64,000 nt of DNA, from sequence record MF360958.1. One strand, given 5' to 3'. The notes beneath the pieces were generated by a model. The model was not told the DNA's origin and ran no database searches. It saw only the letters and a program-made list of their open reading frames with translations. Made by a program: the position numbers and the translations under genes. Positions within the stretch are counted from its first letter, which is position 1. Each line of letters starts with the position of its first letter. Below, piece by piece: positions 3,602-38,927 of this stretch.

Positions 3602-4105
3602 ATGAAAGATAAAAAAACTGGAATGGGAAGTCACCAATCAGCACATATGAAAACTGATGAATGGTTAACCCCTCCTTAAATTATTGAAAGTTTAGGCGAA
3701 TTTGACCTAGACCCTTGTAGCCCCGGAGATAGAAGACCGTGGGATATGGCAAAAAATCATTATGGACTTCCTGAAAAGGATGGACTTGTAGAACCTTGGT
3801 TTGGTAGAGTATGGTGCAATCCGCCGTATGGCAGGGATACTATCAAATGGATGAATAAATTATGCGAACATGGAAATGGAATAGCTCTGATTTTTGCCAG
3901 AACAGAAACATCCATGTTTTTTGATACTGTTTGGGATAAAGCCGATGCAGTTTTCTTTTTTAGAGGAAGACTTTATTTTAGAGACATTTTTGGTAATAAA
4001 GCTAAAGCTAATGCGGGAGCACCTTCCTGTTTAGTTGCATATGGAAATAATAATGTTTTATCTTTAGAAAAAAGCAATTTAGATGGAAAATTAATTTTAT
4101 TATAA
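3602..4105 (+). pseudogene. phage N6-adenine DNA methyltransferase (Dam-like) interrupted by an in-frame TAA at 3677-3679
   Basis: ATG 3602 frame reads TDEWLTPP*IIESLGEFDLDPC and continues into the VWCNPPYG catalytic motif and ARTET. Confidence 0.85.
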
Positions 4106-4413
4106 GAGGAAAAAATTTACATTATACGATTTCTTGAATTCGTTAAAGTAAAACAGAAATGTTTTAATACTAAAGATGATTGGGAAGACATTCAATGGGC
4201 TGATGTTTAAGGTGGTATTATGAAATATTTAATATTCTTACCACTAATACTTATCTTCTTGATAAGCTATTATTTTTTAAAGAAATGCAAACAAAGTACA
4301 TCAACGTATAAAGCTGTGAATAATATAGGACATGCAACTATCGTTTTCGTCCTTGGATTATTGTATTTTGTTTGCTGTATATTGCTAGTATTAGGTTAAT
4401 AAGGGGATTATTT

Positions 4414-4833
4414 ATGTATGTCAATTTTGAAGATTTAAATGATCATATTGGGCAAGTTGTTTATATGAACAATAAGCCCGAAGAAATTTATGAAATTGTA
4501 TCAGTTAACGAAGTCGTTAATGATATTAAAGTTATTTTTAATATTAGCAATAAACAAAGTCATAACACTCTAAGCTCTAATTTTCATCTCAAAGACTTTA
4601 ACAGTCTTATCCAAAACACCGAAGATGATCTTGAACATTATAAAAATCTGAAAAAAATGTTTACAGGGTGGCATGTTGATCTTTTAGATACTTATATTTA
4701 TACATATATTAATACAGAAGTTTTAGGATTTGAAAAAAATAAAACTGAAAATGGAAGTGATGAACCTATTCCTCAAATTACAAAAGAATCTTTCATTAAT
4801 AAATTTAAAGATATTATAAAATGGTGGAAGTAA
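4414..4833 (+). CDS. hypothetical protein
   Basis: Start moved to MYVNFED, downstream of AAGGGG RBS. Confidence 0.6.
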   Translation: MYVNFEDLNDHIGQVVYMNNKPEEIYEIVSVNEVVNDIKVIFNISNKQSHNTLSSNFHLKDFNSLIQNTEDDLEHYKNLKKMFTGWHVDLLDTYIYTYINTEVLGFEKNKTENGSDEPIPQITKESFINKFKDIIKWWK

Positions 4834-4913
4834 ATATGGACTTTATTACTTTTATTCAATGTATTAATATTTTAGATGGTCTTATTTTCGGATTTTTAAC
4901 TTTTGAAACCCTA

Positions 4914-4942
4914 TTGACATTAACTTAATAATATATTATCAT
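4914..4942 (+). promoter_or_regulatory. sigma70-type promoter upstream of the 278-nt tRNA-like RNA
   Basis: TTGACA(4914-4919)-N17-TATCAT(4937-4942). Confidence 0.7.
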
Positions 4943-5011
4943 GTTTATATGTTGTGGCATGGCGGGTAAGCCCTCAAGATACTTTTAAATGCTTGGAAAC
5001 CGCCTTATAAT

Positions 5012-5289
5012 CTGCTAGTAATGCTCAAAGCGAAAGGGATAGTTTAAAACACTCTCATACTAATATGATCGTGGAAGAAAAATGGTAACATAAAGCAACG
5101 ACCATGTTTAGGGTATCACCCCGCCGACCAGAGCGTATCTGGCAGGCTTTATGGTGACATTGGACTGAAGTGATCAGAATGTGTGATGAAGATTCAAATT
5201 TGAACGAGTAGCGTGGTAGAGCTTGCGCGACACCCTAAACATGGTCTTTTACGCGCAGGTTGATGGTTCGAGTCCATCCTAGCAGGCCA
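5012..5289 (+). ncRNA. 278-nt tRNA-scaffolded ncRNA with ~190-nt D-loop insertion and 22-nt anticodon-position loop
   Basis: Acceptor CTGCTAG(5012-5018)/CTAGCAG(5279-5285)+G+CCA; T-arm GATGG-TTCGAGT-CCATC; D-stem GCTC(5023-5026)/GAGC(5219-5222); stem GCGCG/CGCGC; variable loop AGGTT. Confidence 0.8.
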
Positions 5290-5309
5290 AATTTATTATG
5301 GAGTGATTT

Positions 5310-5672
5310 ATGATAATATTTTTTATTATTTTATTACTGTGTATATTAGTTGCACTGGTTGTAAAAAAGAACAATAAAAAAAGTGAAGTTCTTTTAGATT
5401 GTAGTAATGAAAAATGCCAATGGAATAATAATCAACCATGCCCTTATAAACTAACTAGATGTGATGATGGTAATAATGGATATAGAAGAAAAGTAGAAGG
5501 AATAAACGAATGTTGCAAAACTAGACAAACTAGAGTTAAAATGGCTAAGATAATTTTAGATAACAAAATAGAGACTAGAGGCACACAGATAATTAAAAAT
5601 TCTAAACAAGTATTCGAAAGACATAAACAAGATTATCCAGAAGAACATAAATTTCTATTTGGATTAAAATAA
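5310..5672 (+). CDS. hypothetical protein with N-terminal membrane anchor and Cys motifs
   Basis: Hydrophobic first ~18 aa; GGAG RBS. Confidence 0.65.
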   Translation: MIIFFIILLLCILVALVVKKNNKKSEVLLDCSNEKCQWNNNQPCPYKLTRCDDGNNGYRRKVEGINECCKTRQTRVKMAKIILDNKIETRGTQIIKNSKQVFERHKQDYPEEHKFLFGLK

Positions 5673-6123
5673 ATTTGACTATTAAGAATCGAACCTTCAT
5701 ACTGTATAGAACAAATAGGACTTAATTATGAAAGTAGTTTTCACAATATTAACACTCTTCCTGTTCTTTTTTGGAATGAGTATGTTTGGATTCTATGTTG
5801 AATATGACTCATTTGCAGCCATTGATGCTCAGCATTTTGTTCAATCCTGTCTTATAGCTGTAGTGGGTCTTTTATTTTCATGGCTAGTAAGTGCTATATT
5901 TTAAAACTATAATTAGGATATAAATATGTCAGATGTATTAACAATTTTTTGTTTCGGAGACTCCATGACAGCAACTGAATGGTCTATAAATAATGTTAAT
6001 AAAGGGGAATTTATTAGTTCAATATTTATATCATTTGTAGCAACTTGTTTTGTCTGGGAAACACTGTTAGAAGATTATTCTAAATACGTTGATAAAGATT
6101 AAAAAATCAACATCAAAAAATTC

Positions 6124-6160
6124 TTGACAATTGAGCATTTTTTCAGTAACATTATAAATA
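6124..6160 (+). promoter_or_regulatory. tandem sigma70 and T4-late-like promoter of the leader/tRNA operon
   Basis: TTGACA(6124-6129)-N17-TAACAT(6147-6152), followed by TATAAATA(6153-6160). Confidence 0.75.
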
Positions 6161-6196
6161 AGATAAACAAACGAATTAAACATTAAGGTAATTATT

Positions 6197-6283
6197 ATGC
6201 GTACTAACACAACAGTTAATCAGTATCAACTACAACAACTACCACTGGTTCTCTATCCCTATAATGGAGGGAAGGGCTGTTGA
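6197..6283 (+). CDS. attenuator leader peptide MRTNTTVNQYQLQQLPLVLYPYNGGKGC (28 aa; below the ORF-track cutoff)
   Basis: AAGGT RBS 7 nt upstream of ATG; control codons CAG TAT CAA CTA CAA CAA CTA CCA CTG GTT CTC TAT CCC TAT; the 3' end encodes attenuator segments 1 and 2. Confidence 0.85.
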   Translation: MRTNTTVNQYQLQQLPLVLYPYNGGKGC

Positions 6284-6345
6284 CGTGCGTGTAATATAAA
6301 CATGCAACGAATTCAAAAAGCCCTTCCAATTGGAAGGGCTTTTTT
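6251..6345 (+). promoter_or_regulatory. transcription attenuator: protector 1:2, antiterminator 2:3, terminator 3:4
   Basis: 1:2 CTCT-a-TCCCT(6251-6260)/AGGGAAGGG(6268-6276); 2:3 GGAAGGGCT(6270-6278)/AGCCCTTCC(6319-6327); 3:4 AAAAAGCCCTTCCA/TGGAAGGGCTTTTT plus U-run. Confidence 0.85.
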
Positions 6346-6365
6346 ATTGGGTTTTAGAAAATTTC

Positions 6366-6450
6366 GGGGATGTGGTGGAATTGGGATACACGGTTGCCTT
6401 AGAAGTAACTGCCTTCGGGCTTGGGAGTTCGAGTCTCCCCATCCCCACCA
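6366..6450 (+). tRNA. tRNA-Leu(TAG)
   Basis: GGGGATG/CATCCCC acceptor, GTTGC-CTTAGAA-GTAAC anticodon arm, long variable arm, encoded CCA. Confidence 0.95.
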
Positions 6451-6490
6451 AAACAATTGAGAAAGAAAGAAGTATAGAGAAATAAAGAAA

Positions 6491-7018
6491 ATGATAAAAG
6501 AAGAAGAAATTTGGAAAGATGTTGATGATTATCCAGAATATTTTATGATCAGTTCTTTTGGTAGAGTATGGTCGAAAAGAACTAATAAAATATTAAAGCA
6601 AACAATTGGAAAAACAGGTTATCCAGTAATATCTTCTAAAATAGGTGGTAGAAAAGGTAAATCAATTTGTAAAAAAGTTCATCGTTGGGTTGCTAATGCA
6701 TTTATAGATAATTTAAACAATAGATCCTGTGTTAATCATATCGATGGGAATAAAACGAATAATTATTGGAAAAATCTTGAATGGTGTACGTACAGTGAGA
6801 ACACAAAACATGCTTATAAGAACAATTTAATTGAAGCCAAATGTGGCGAAGAACATTCTTCATCAGTTTTAAGTTTAGATTTTATTAAACAGATAGAAAA
6901 TGAATACGTGCCATATTCTAAAACAAATGGATTAAGAGCTTTAGCAAGAAAATATAATGTAAAACATAATACATTATCAAATGCCTTAAACAATGTGAGT
7001 AAATATTACGGGAAGTAG
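6491..7018 (+). CDS. NUMOD4-HNH free-standing homing endonuclease inside the tRNA operon
   Basis: EIWKDV..Y.ISSFGRV NUMOD4; VHRWVA.AFI..VNHIDGNKTNN..NLEW HNH; last codons overlap tRNA-Pro. Confidence 0.92.
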   Translation: MIKEEEIWKDVDDYPEYFMISSFGRVWSKRTNKILKQTIGKTGYPVISSKIGGRKGKSICKKVHRWVANAFIDNLNNRSCVNHIDGNKTNNYWKNLEWCTYSENTKHAYKNNLIEAKCGEEHSSSVLSLDFIKQIENEYVPYSKTNGLRALARKYNVKHNTLSNALNNVSKYYGK

Positions 7019-7084
7019 CTCAAGTGGGAGAGCACGCGGTTTGGGACCGCGAGGTTGGGGGATCGTGACCCTCCTTCCCGACCA
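7009..7084 (+). tRNA. tRNA-Pro(TGG)
   Basis: CGGGAAG/CTTCCCG acceptor, CGCGG-TTTGGGA-CCGCG, CCA; atypical T-loop ATCGTGA. Confidence 0.92.
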
Positions 7085-7098
7085 GACATGTAAGTAGT

Positions 7099-7176
7099 AG
7101 CTGACTGAAGGGAATTGGTATACCTTTCTGATCGAGAGTCAGAAGCGTCCCGGTTCAAGTCCGGGGTCAGCTACCA
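7099..7176 (+). tRNA. atypical tRNA with anticodon GAG (Leu decoding), C33 and short variable loop
   Basis: AGCTGAC/GTCAGCT acceptor +A+CCA; AAGG/CCTT D-stem; TCTGA-TCGAGAG-TCAGA; CCCGG-TTCAAGT-CCGGG. Confidence 0.75.
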
Positions 7177-7190
7177 ACATTTAGGAAAAT

Positions 7191-7276
7191 GGAGCGGCTG
7201 GGCACACTAGGGGAGCCCATCGGACTGTAAATTCGACGCGAAAGCTGTATAGGTTCGACTCCTATCCGCTCCACCA
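7191..7276 (+). tRNA. tRNA-Tyr(GTA)
   Basis: GGAGCGG/CCGCTCC acceptor, TCGGA-CTGTAAA-TTCGA, variable arm, CCA. Confidence 0.93.
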
Positions 7277-7317
7277 TTTTTTAATAGCATTATTGTTAAT
7301 AATGCTATTGCAGAGTT

Positions 7318-7472
7318 TAGGATGTAGCTGACATTGGTATAGGCGCATGGGTGGTTGACCATGTTGAGGATTACGCAACGGTAACAGGTTAGTGGCAATA
7401 TACTAGTTAAGTTGGCATTGATACTACCAATACGCGCCTCACTTGTGGGTTCGATTCCCACCATCCTAACCA
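7318..7472 (+). ncRNA. 155-nt tRNA-like RNA with 8-nt anticodon loop and ~80-nt variable region
   Basis: TAGGATG/CATCCTA+A+CCA; T-arm GTGGG-TTCGATT-CCCAC; CATGG-GTGGTTGA-CCATG; TGAGG(7365-7369)/CCTCA(7437-7441) closes the insertion. Confidence 0.75.
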
Positions 7473-7537
7473 AACATTATAGAGGTAAAATATGAAATAC
7501 CATATGGAAGAATGGGAAACAGGTTCTAAAGAATAAT

Positions 7538-7614
7538 AGGGGAGTCGCCAAGTGGTCTAAGGCGCTAGGTTTTGATCTTAGTATGCGGAAGTTCGAATCT
7601 TCCCTCCCCTGCCA
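7538..7614 (+). tRNA. tRNA-Gln(TTG)
   Basis: AGGGGAG/CTCCCCT+G+CCA; CTAGG-TTTTGAT-CTTAG. Confidence 0.93.
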
Positions 7615-7617
7615 AAC

Positions 7618-7645
7618 AAAGCCCTCTCAATTGAGAGGGCTTTTT
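7618..7645 (+). terminator. intrinsic terminator ending the tRNA operon
   Basis: AAAGCCCTCTCAATTGAGAGGGCTTTTT perfect palindrome plus U-run. Confidence 0.9.
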
Positions 7646-7732
7646 ATATTGTCTCAAAGTATATATGATTGAGGGGTTGTTTTAAATATTATTTCTTGAT
7701 ATAATAGTAATTAGTTAAAAGGAGATATAGTT

Positions 7733-7981
7733 ATGAAATCAATTTATACAGTAATGTGGGTAGAGAATGAAGGGCTGCGTTTTCCTAATGTGTATCATCA
7801 AGTATATGTATATGCAGATGATCATAAGGATGCTCTTAGGAGATTTAATAAAAACCTAAGAGATGGTAATAAACAATGTCTTACAGTATCCAGTAAACCA
7901 CTGCCGGAAAAATTTTCTGATCTTCCTTTGGGGATCGCTGTTACAAAGATTGAAGTGTTGGATTATCCGGGTGTTGAATAA
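7733..7981 (+). CDS. hypothetical protein
   Basis: AAGGAGATATAGTTATG RBS module shared with 26981 and 27520. Confidence 0.7.
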   Translation: MKSIYTVMWVENEGLRFPNVYHQVYVYADDHKDALRRFNKNLRDGNKQCLTVSSKPLPEKFSDLPLGIAVTKIEVLDYPGVE

Positions 7982-8259
7982 CTATTCATTATAATTTGCG
8001 AGGAAATTAATATGCGGTATTTAGCGTTTTTTATTACTAATATTGCAACAATTGTTCTATCATTGATGTTAATTAGTATCGTTGGAGATACTATTATCAA
8101 TGTATTGTTTGTTGTATTAGTGTCAAGTTTGATCACACCATTAGTAGGGAAATATTTATTGGAATATTTTTATTTTAAAGGACTATGAGAAATAGTGTAT
8201 TATATTGAGAAATATATTTTTAAATATTATAACTGTTCATAGAAATTGTGGAGAAAAAT

Positions 8260-10117: not shown

Positions 10118-10248
10118 GTTCGGGTAGCTTAAAAGGGTGCAATCGGTTTAGATGAGATCCATGGTATCATTTATTCTTGATTACATCGACAAAGCGGACA
10201 GGACATAGGCCCCCTGTCATGGTGGTTCGAATCCATCCCCGAGCACCA
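10118..10248 (+). ncRNA. 131-nt tRNA-like RNA lacking a canonical anticodon loop
   Basis: GTTCGGG/CCCGAGC+A+CCA; GGTGG-TTCGAAT-CCATC; hairpin GACAGG/CCTGTC before the T-arm. Confidence 0.7.
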
Positions 10249-38426: not shown

Positions 38427-38927
38427 TTATTTTCCATCATGACATAATTGTTTAAATGATTCATTATTATCTTCAAAGAAGATATCATAATCAAAAAATA
38501 CCCAACCTTTATATTTTAAACCACGAGTAACATCATATTTAGGATTGTTTTCAACACAAATATACTTGCCTTTACGATTAATCTTTATAACAATAATATT
38601 AATATCATTCTTATCAGCTGGCTCTAAACATTGTTCAATCCATGTGTCAAGTAAAGGACAAGCATTACTGAATAATTGATGAAAATTAAACTCTTTATAA
38701 AACTTACATTCCATGTTCATAAATCCAAATACATCAGGAGGGGTAACGTCGCCTTTATGTGAACGTGTCTGTGTTTCTGTTAATGTGTCCTTTCGATAAG
38801 CATTAGCACCACCAACAAATGCTCCCGAACCAATTGTACGAACAAATGTTTCTCCATACCGTTGCGTTAAATCTTTTGCAATATCACGTTCTAAACTGCT
38901 TCCTTTTGATTTTTGTTTACTTGGCAT
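38427..38927 (-). CDS. Holliday junction resolvase (archaeal Hjc / T5 D14-like)
   Basis: SKQKSKGSSLERDIA, GD, MECKFYK. Confidence 0.8.
   Translation of the reverse strand: MPSKQKSKGSSLERDIAKDLTQRYGETFVRTIGSGAFVGGANAYRKDTLTETQTRSHKGDVTPPDVFGFMNMECKFYKEFNFHQLFSNACPLLDTWIEQCLEPADKNDINIIVIKINRKGKYICVENNPKYDVTRGLKYKGWVFFDYDIFFEDNNESFKQLCHDGK

Follow-up and report, generated by a model that had tools for sequence, protein, structure and literature searches.

A probable interrupted tRNA gene of asparagine lineage with two mutually complementary inserts in Salicola phage SCTP-2

The window analyzed here is a whole 64-kb stretch of DNA, positions 310001–374000 of record MF360958.1 at 100% identity, from the 440-kb genome of Salicola phage SCTP-2; positions below are those of the window unless another source is named. 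Between gp376 and gp377, a tRNA-derived RNA gene of 278 nt (5012–5289, plus strand), named element A, was identified, which is very probably an interrupted tRNA gene of the asparagine lineage carrying two mutually complementary inserts. It is unannotated in the GenBank record, whose examined stretches list protein-coding genes only. The GC content is 0.41–0.48 across 4950–5290 and about 0.2–0.3 in the surrounding DNA. All features of the locus lie on the plus strand. A promoter-like site of sigma-70 type, TTGACA-17-TATCAT (4914–4942), matches the consensus at 11 of 12 positions and has the top score in 4000–8000, with the caveat that the overall count of promoter-like sites was no higher than in shuffled sequences. 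It is followed by a leader hairpin, GGCGG...CCGCC (4961–5004, GC 0.435), resembling the anticodon arm of tRNA-Ser(UGA). On the other side, gp377 (5310–5672), which served as the syntenic anchor, begins 20 nt past the CCA end of element A with a ribosome-binding site and an ATG. No terminator was found between the promoter or element A and gp377. A preliminary description of the locus had given the element its own sigma70 promoter at 4914; the site is there, and it probably drives both the element A RNA and gp377. No homologue of gp376 was found.

The same description had reported a complete tRNA frame at 5012–5289, and every sequence statement made about it holds. The acceptor strand CTGCTAG (5012–5018) pairs with CTAGCAG (5279–5285), followed by G73 at 5286 and CCA at 5287–5289. 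The D stem is formed by GCTC (5023–5026) and GAGC (5219–5222), and a GCGCG/CGCGC stem (5225–5229/5252–5256) closes 22 nt and is followed by AGGTT and the T arm GATGG TTCGAGT CCATC. Thus, a 7-bp acceptor stem, a 4-bp D stem with a G18/G19 loop, a 5-bp T stem with a UUCRANY loop and a discriminator plus CCA are present as in canonical tRNAs. Two junctions are irregular. The acceptor and D stems are separated by four bases, UAAU (5019–5022), and not by the two of a tRNA, and the D and anticodon stems by two bases, TT, and not one when the GCGCG/CGCGC register is used.

The D-loop insertion, described earlier as about 190 nt, measures 183 nt (5027–5209). It follows the 5′ strand of the D stem, and a complete D-loop, AGCGTGGTA, sits 3′ of it. 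Because the 3′ part of the D-loop, AGCGUGGUA, is already a complete D-loop by itself, 5027–5209 is read as an insert between tRNA positions 13 and 14 (insert 1), as it was placed by alignment to the tRNA-Asn of JG004 and to element D, another over-long tRNA gene of SCTP-2 described below. The border of insert 1 can slide by a few bases since AGCG is repeated at 5029–5032 and 5210–5213. Its GC content of 0.41, against a genome mean of 0.30, falls in the top 4.5% of windows, and a profile of the phage tRNAs detected no decayed tRNA pieces in it.

The 22 nt enclosed by the GCGCG/CGCGC stem, which had been taken as an anticodon loop of that length, are better read as a 17-nt insert at tRNA positions 31/32 (insert 2) plus an intact 7-nt loop. 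When insert 1 and the AU at 5021–5022 were deleted, the intron mode of ARAGORN found the 17-nt insert GACACCCUAAACAUGGU (5229–5245), after which follow a UGCGC/GCGCA stem and the loop CUUUUAC in a register shifted by one base. In the shifted register only one base, position 26, separates the D and anticodon stems, and the second of the junction irregularities noted above disappears. Removal of the AU was needed before ARAGORN used the true acceptor stem. With 5027–5209, 5229–5245 and the AU deleted, the remaining 76-mer was called as tRNA-Lys(UUU) by ARAGORN at default settings, and a strict cloverleaf solver returned the same parse as its sole solution. All 21 stem pairs of this parse are Watson–Crick, five of them differing from element D on both sides (compensated changes), and U8, G18/G19, U33, A37, the T loop, G73 and CCA are all present. 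The 5-bp anticodon stem and the 7-nt loop with U33 and a purine at 37 are obtained only without 5229–5245.

The extent of insert 2 agrees to within one base with that of the arm complementary to 5100–5117, and because the 17-nt insert coincides with this pairing arm, the "22-nt loop" is interpreted as insert 2 plus a canonical loop. Some canonical solution was also found in 32.5% of shuffled 22-nt loops, and free brute-force deletions in the over-long element C of the same phage gave many spurious ARAGORN tRNAs. In view of these controls, the weight of the interpretation rests on the coincidence of the insert and helix borders, the register fit and the fit of the D arm without free choice; we estimate the joint chance of the three at a few per cent.

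Read in this way, element A consists of three exon-like pieces separated by the two inserts. Piece 1 (5012–5026), recognized from the sequence, the frame scan and ARAGORN on deletion variants, comprises the acceptor 5′ strand (5012–5018), U8 and A9 (5019–5020), the extra AU (5021–5022) and the D-stem strand GCUC (5023–5026). Piece 2 (5210–5228) contains the D-loop, GAGC, U5223 at position 26 and UGCGC (5224–5228). Piece 3 (5246–5289) starts with the loop CUUUUAC (5246–5252), in which UUU at 5248–5250 is the anticodon, and continues through GCGCA (5253–5257), the variable loop GGUU, the T arm (5262–5278), the acceptor 3′ strand (5279–5285), G73 and CCA. A profile of the phage tRNAs aligned to piece 3 from position 33 to 76 (E 3e-06). 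Within insert 1, a 7-bp closing helix (5042–5048 with 5199–5205) leaves a 4-nt tail (5206–5209) before piece 2; it is present in the fold of insert 1 alone and in the cloverleaf-enforced fold, with a pair probability of only about 0.4. A second long-range pairing joins 5081–5096 to 5146–5161 (16 nt, 81% complementary). Arm L of the long helix (5100–5117) follows and is succeeded by A5118, C5119 and C5120, which resemble a discriminator plus CC.

Arm L, GACCATGTTTAGGGTATC, differs from the reverse complement of 5229–5246 at one position, in agreement with the reported pairing at 17 of 18 positions. Insert 2 pairs over its full length with arm L, and C5246 contributes the 18th pair; a repeat search extended the arms to 21 nt at 90% (5097–5117/5229–5249). 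Two matches of this kind (three mismatches or fewer) were found in the window, compared with 0.03 expected from shuffles. The duplex alone was calculated at −27.2 kcal/mol. In the minimum-energy fold of element A, the acceptor stem, T arm and long helix are retained and the D and anticodon stems are absent, and the ensemble pair probability is about 0.99 for the long helix and about 0 for the other two stems. The enforced cloverleaf reaches −72.0 versus −80.1 kcal/mol, a cost of 8 kcal/mol. That the long helix and the anticodon stem exclude each other, as had been suggested, is a reasonable prediction of the thermodynamic model for this single sequence, and the primary transcript indeed cannot decode as a normal tRNA. 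The fold z-score of element A is only −1.7, and −0.9 when the leader is included. In the favoured fold, the 5′ side of G5229 is unpaired and the pair G5229:C5117 is followed by A-C-C-C. Of the RNase P guide-type pattern (single-stranded leader, helix, RCCA), the predicted fold has the unpaired leader, and its tail is ACCC and internal.

The position of element A next to gp377 was compared with that in relatives. Homologues of gp377 with 63% identity were found on short marine contigs (Tara, ENA, Logan). On contig L025, an intact tRNA-Asn(GUU), preceded by tRNA-Asp, ends 22 nt upstream of the gp377 homologue; the spacing from element A to gp377 in SCTP-2 is 20 nt, and the flank GCCAAUUUA is common to both. 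On L018 and L019, a GIY-YIG homing endonuclease gene lies between tRNA-Asn and the gp377 homologue. This endonuclease (L018:612–1286, L019:481–1155) is a SegE-like protein of 224 aa with NUMOD3. On L020 and L021, tRNA-Asn is reduced to its last 25 nt, and a 108-aa open reading frame stands in place of the endonuclease in contigs where only these 25 nt are left (L005:48–368; L020:560–585). The spot between tRNA-Asn and gp377 is thus a rearrangement hotspot in the marine relatives, and the synteny with the intact tRNA-Asn identifies element A as its positional counterpart at this hotspot. The exon parts are also nearest to tRNA-Asn (0.77 to element D and 0.71 to JG004, against 0.64 to the phage's own tRNA-Lys), and elements A and D have in common the D arm, the GCGC core of the anticodon stem, the variable loop, the T loop and G73. 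Element A is therefore considered, with high confidence, to descend from a tRNA-Asn at a conserved position that was interrupted at 13/14 and at the 5′ edge of the anticodon loop, its loop CUUUUAC being of lysine type.

Element A is not the only over-long tRNA frame of this phage. When the genome was scanned for a T arm, 7-bp acceptor stem and CCA, four such frames were found, all in the tRNA island (genome 296.7–331 kb) and none elsewhere in the genome: A, B (window 7318–7472, 155 nt), C (window 10118–10248, 131 nt) and D (genome 298729–298850, L002:38729–38850, 122 nt). Element D scored 46 bits in the Rfam tRNA model, its alignment being broken in the anticodon loop, after CUGU, by a gap of 48 nt, and its 3′ part is 90% identical to a Pseudomonas-phage tRNA-Asn. 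After removal of 45 nt (CUGU|...|UAA), it was called as tRNA-Asn(GUU) by ARAGORN. The insert of D is predicted to fold into an acceptor/T-arm minihelix, a 6-bp stem on a 5-bp stem with the loop UUCAACU (ensemble frequency 0.79). Its length equals 7+10+17+7+4, the tRNA span from position 1 to 76 minus the D and anticodon arms. The D stem of element D carries a bulged A.

Elements B and C are non-canonical, as is the tRNA-like oddity E that ARAGORN called beside 23 standard tRNAs (24 calls in the phage). Element B, located between tRNA-Tyr and tRNA-Gln, has the frame TAGGATG/CATCCTA with A73, CCA and canonical T and D arms; an 8-nt loop on a CAUGG/CCAUG stem is followed by about 80 extra nt before the T arm, and neither an Rfam match nor a canonical parse was obtained. 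Element C starts 10 nt after the AAA-ATPase gene gp384 and carries in its D-loop a rod-like hairpin that spans about 52 nt, while its anticodon loop has 10 nt and its variable region only 2 nt; it reached 26 bits in the Rfam tRNA model (cut-off 29) and a fold z-score of −2.5. As candidates for the missing tRNA-Ala and tRNA-Arg, B and C gave many spurious ARAGORN calls on brute-force deletion and no solution with the strict solver, and no such claim is made. The motif GACCATGTT(T/G)AGG occurs in A and B, and a shared insert family was rejected, the local alignment lying within shuffles (p 0.03 in one test). A miniature inverted-repeat transposable element with terminal inverted repeats was likewise rejected for element A, because its arms enclose true parts of a tRNA, arranged as they should be.

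The leader hairpin upstream of element A matches the loop and 3′ stem of tRNA-Ser(UGA) at 12 of 13 positions (z 4.3; 0/300 shuffles), and its 5′ strand GCGGgU matches the same anticodon arm, with an insert of about 25 nt at 31/32 and the anticodon UGG. Judged from this sequence match, it looks like a remnant, now dead, of yet another interrupted tRNA gene, the third of the phage. Other unusual sequences were observed beside tRNA genes of the island. A tRNA-like gene at L002:38517–38587 (Rfam 40 bits) carries G3:U70 and A73, the alanine identity set. Where an anticodon loop would be expected it has a loop of 4–5 nt, C7 and A66 are mismatched, and the CCA is not encoded; ARAGORN called it as Tyr(ATA). 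GC-rich unannotated stretches lie at L002:38090–38180 and 38590–38728, the former being bounded by GGATG and CATCC-ACCA, reminiscent of an acceptor stem that ends in CCA, and showing no recognizable T arm. An HNH homing endonuclease gene (NUMOD4 and HNH_3) occupies window positions 6491–7018 between tRNA-Leu(UAG) and tRNA-Pro. Outside the island, gp224 (genome 215993–218077), gp267 (256428–257321) and gp534 (429356–429748) are all annotated as terminase large subunit and could be a split or fragmented gene, or paralogues.

The phage tRNAs cover 17 amino acids, with Asn, Ala and Arg missing. AAT is the most used codon of the phage (76 per 1000) and AAA the fourth (61 per 1000); each of the two Asn-lineage genes has an interruption at its anticodon loop, and AAT is left without an uninterrupted tRNA-Asn. 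The GenBank record calls most proteins hypothetical. In a Pfam scan of 20 phage proteins, gp50 was assigned to the Rnl1 family of ligases and gp464 to the PF09414 ligases. No EndA/Sen splicing endonuclease was found in this general scan, and no proteome-wide search was made for one.

Native element A was missed by the standard searches. ARAGORN at default settings did not report it, and the tRNA, tmRNA and intron modes returned only forced, mismatched models on the native sequence. An Rfam scan (cmscan, 4227 families, 601 nt, at the gathering score and at E up to 10) gave no match to the tRNA family RF00005 and no relevant family, only two chance snoRNA matches. No homologue of element A was found by blastn in 50,697 phage records, in IMG/VR by exact-pattern scans or by way of gp377 and its marine homologue, or in JGI metagenomes by arm pattern and gp377 alignment. 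A literature search turned up nothing on phage tRNA inserts of this type.

The preliminary description had counted a spliced tRNA that fully explains the element as evidence against its own proposal. The 76-mer tRNA-Lys(UUU) provides such a reading, in which splicing itself is a prediction. The reading that we tentatively favour, as a serious possibility falling somewhat short of even, is that element A is an interrupted tRNA gene of intron-like type, from whose transcript RNA processing excises both inserts and leaves a tRNA that reads with UUU. In its favour count the intact stem pairs with their compensated changes, the GC content of insert 1, the heavy use of AAT and AAA in a phage whose Asn-lineage genes are both interrupted, and the two RNA ligases. 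The transcript would start at the 4914 promoter, and in its initial fold the RNA would have the acceptor stem, the T arm and the helix of 18 bp that joins the inserts, but not yet the D and anticodon stems. As the inserts' own structure, this helix would hold them together and expose their borders to endonucleases of the host. RNase P is well known to cut minihelices, and also guide-paired helices, that bear a 3′ RCCA tail. The end of the long helix, G5229:C5117 followed by A-C-C with a single-stranded 5′ side, would resemble a minimal substrate of RNase P, placing the cleavage at 5228|5229, exactly on the 5′ border of insert 2. Metal-dependent endonucleases leave 3′-OH and 5′-phosphate ends, and such ends might be joined by the two ATP-dependent RNA ligases of the phage. 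Removal of both inserts would then yield a tRNA of 76–78 nt reading AAA. Element D, with its minihelix insert, might be matured in the same general way, as the 5′ border of its insert also fits RNase P. The fuller proposal of a protein-dependent splicing in the phage, in which acceptor-like insert helices recruit RNase P or other endonucleases leaving 3′-OH/5′-phosphate ends and ligases of Rnl1/Rnl2 type rejoin the exons, is regarded as distinctly unlikely. On that proposal, the inserts may persist by breaking the recognition of the highest-demand tRNAs by homing endonucleases or anticodon nucleases.

Several observations weigh against removal of the inserts. To our knowledge, protein-dependent tRNA splicing is not known in bacteria or their phages, and an enzyme can be proposed for only one of the four cuts required. 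No intron or ribozyme was matched in Rfam even at E up to 10, and element A is without a homologue in every collection searched. The extra AU between positions 9 and 10 is unexplained, the Asn anticodon has been lost, and SCTP-2 encodes a normal tRNA-Lys(UUU) in any case. The loop-shuffle and deletion controls described above show how readily canonical solutions arise, and templated repair could have left the near-perfect inverted copy behind as a scar. Elements B and C do not resolve into canonical tRNAs, and together with the leader fragment they indicate that the island does contain decaying tRNA genes.

These points lead to an alternative that follows closely in rank, possible and on the unlikely side, namely that element A is a dead or dying tRNA gene whose inserts are repair scars at a homing-endonuclease break and rearrangement hotspot and whose long helix has no function. 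The 17-nt insert would be an inverted, templated copy of the stretch 111 nt upstream, produced by quasi-palindrome template switching, and the RNA would be made only as part of the gp377 leader. The spot in the relatives, with a GIY-YIG gene or only the last 25 nt of tRNA-Asn, fits such a history, as do the fragmentary leader, the non-canonical B, C and E, the irregular AU, the loss of the Asn anticodon beside a normal tRNA-Lys, and the weak fold z-scores; the single mismatch in 18 is what a recent copy would give. The broken stems and lost invariant bases of a tRNA pseudogene were not found in element A, although the inserts and the AU still fit a recent one. Against decay stand the 21 intact stem pairs with five compensated changes relative to D, the intact T loop, G18/G19, U33, A37, G73 and CCA, and an insert of 41% GC in a genome of 30% GC. 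Decay would also leave about 23 tRNAs with none for the most used codon, both Asn genes being hit in the anticodon loop. Another view, which we consider unlikely, is that element A is a stable, non-decoding tRNA-scaffold RNA processed by RNase P, acting as a toggle between cloverleaf and long helix, as a masked guide or antisense segment of 17–18 nt or as a decoy for tRNA-targeting defence. With its tRNA ends (U at −1, 7-bp acceptor, T arm, CCA), the RNA can be expected to be processed and stable, the two predicted states lie 8 kcal/mol apart, the insert is GC-rich and structured, and other non-decoding tRNA-like genes lie in the island. However, no homologues show that either state is conserved, and the intact canonical anticodon loop beside the insert is left unexplained. 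A trans target is also lacking. The best match in the phage genome is a 14-nt exact match to arm L, CATGTTTAGGGTAT, in gp17 (L008:12345–12358; genome 12345–12358, a minus-strand gene), whose mRNA could pair with 5103–5116; it is probably a coincidence, with a rough chance expectation of about 0.03 after multiple testing. The arms have no other close match in the 440-kb genome, and the five hits of the 18-mer in 185,579 representative genomes, all in unrelated metagenome-assembled genomes, are no more than chance. The switch or guide segment suggested in the preliminary description is accordingly possible but unsupported, and unlikely.

Two further explanations are less probable still. The helix of 18–21 bp might be an RNase III or RNase P site for processing or regulation of the gp377–379 mRNA, with the tRNA frame serving only to release the mRNA. 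The absence of a terminator before gp377, the ribosome-binding site and ATG 20 nt past the CCA and a helix length near that needed by RNase III are in line with this role. However, the normal tRNA found at this position in relatives fulfils that role and has no inserts, the helix lies a long way from where the mRNA begins, and nothing specific supports RNase III, making this explanation very unlikely. That a known RNA class was overlooked, such as a tmRNA, a tRNA mimic of Y-RNA type or a self-splicing intron of group I or II within a tRNA, is highly improbable. It could be entertained because bacterial tRNA introns are of group I, the two inserts add up to 200 nt, about the size of the smallest introns of that group, and a 20-codon frame runs from a GCA at 5095. 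This frame is insufficient for a tmRNA, which was found neither by ARAGORN −m nor by Rfam, and element A has G3:C70 and not G3:U70. A group I intron was rejected since no P3–P8 core was detected by covariance model in the 601 nt searched and the U/G border bases are absent: the base before insert 1 is C5026 and not U, and insert 1 ends with U5209 and not G. The insert sites, 13/14 in the D-loop and 31/32, are not inside the anticodon loop, and inspection by eye found neither group I features nor hammerhead-type motifs. For an archaeal or eukaryal intron, no 3-4-3 bulge-helix-bulge could be drawn at the borders of insert 1, insert 2 or the insert of D, and insert 2 has its 5′ border within the GCGCG/CGCGC helix. 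The acceptor stem is formed by the ends of the RNA, unlike in Y RNAs.

Interrupted bacterial tRNA genes are known only with self-splicing group I introns, and archaea and eukaryotes use a dedicated endonuclease. In SCTP-2, a phage of a gammaproteobacterium, at least two Asn-lineage tRNA genes carry inserts that match neither pattern. Their removal, if it takes place, would represent a route of tRNA maturation new to the bacterial world and a role of phage RNA ligases beyond repair; if they are kept, the locus would record the erosion of phage tRNA islands by homing-endonuclease hotspots. In both cases, these genes are overlooked by standard tRNA finders.

Among known systems, the group I introns of bacterial tRNA genes provide the general background (reviewed in PMC3984707). 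Element A resembles those of cyanobacterial tRNA-Leu(UAA) and Azoarcus tRNA-Ile in having a structured insert of about 200 nt without an open reading frame and homing endonuclease genes nearby in relatives, and differs from them in its two inserts with an exon piece between, its sites at 13/14 and 31/32 and the lack of a group I core and of the U(−1)/terminal G. Archaeal multi-intron and split tRNA genes occur in Thermoproteales, Nanoarchaeum and Caldivirga (PMC4090602, PMC3978253). They share with element A non-canonical insert sites including the D-loop, more than one insert and complementary stretches that hold pieces together, whereas element A has no drawable bulge-helix-bulge and its host is a gammaproteobacterium. 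The insert helix, ending in a G:C pair followed by A-C-C like an acceptor, and the acceptor/T-arm minihelix in D recall a further group. Excision of tRNA-like structures by RNase P and RNase Z is familiar from MALAT1/mascRNA and mitochondrial tRNA punctuation, and external guide sequences (EGS) for RNase P are used in EGS technology. These systems only cut, whereas the pieces of element A would need rejoining and its ACCC tail is internal. Quasi-palindrome template switches in T4 and E. coli create or perfect inverted repeats by copying a nearby complementary stretch, usually over a few bases; they would account for a 17-nt insert whose reverse complement lies 111 nt away, but the copy in element A is longer and lies exactly at the border of stem and loop. 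A further comparison is with the species 1 and 2 RNAs of T4, stable tRNA-like products of phage tRNA clusters to which no function has been assigned. By description only, these are likewise extra, over-long tRNA-like RNAs among phage tRNA genes; element A, by contrast, resolves into a canonical tRNA plus inserts.

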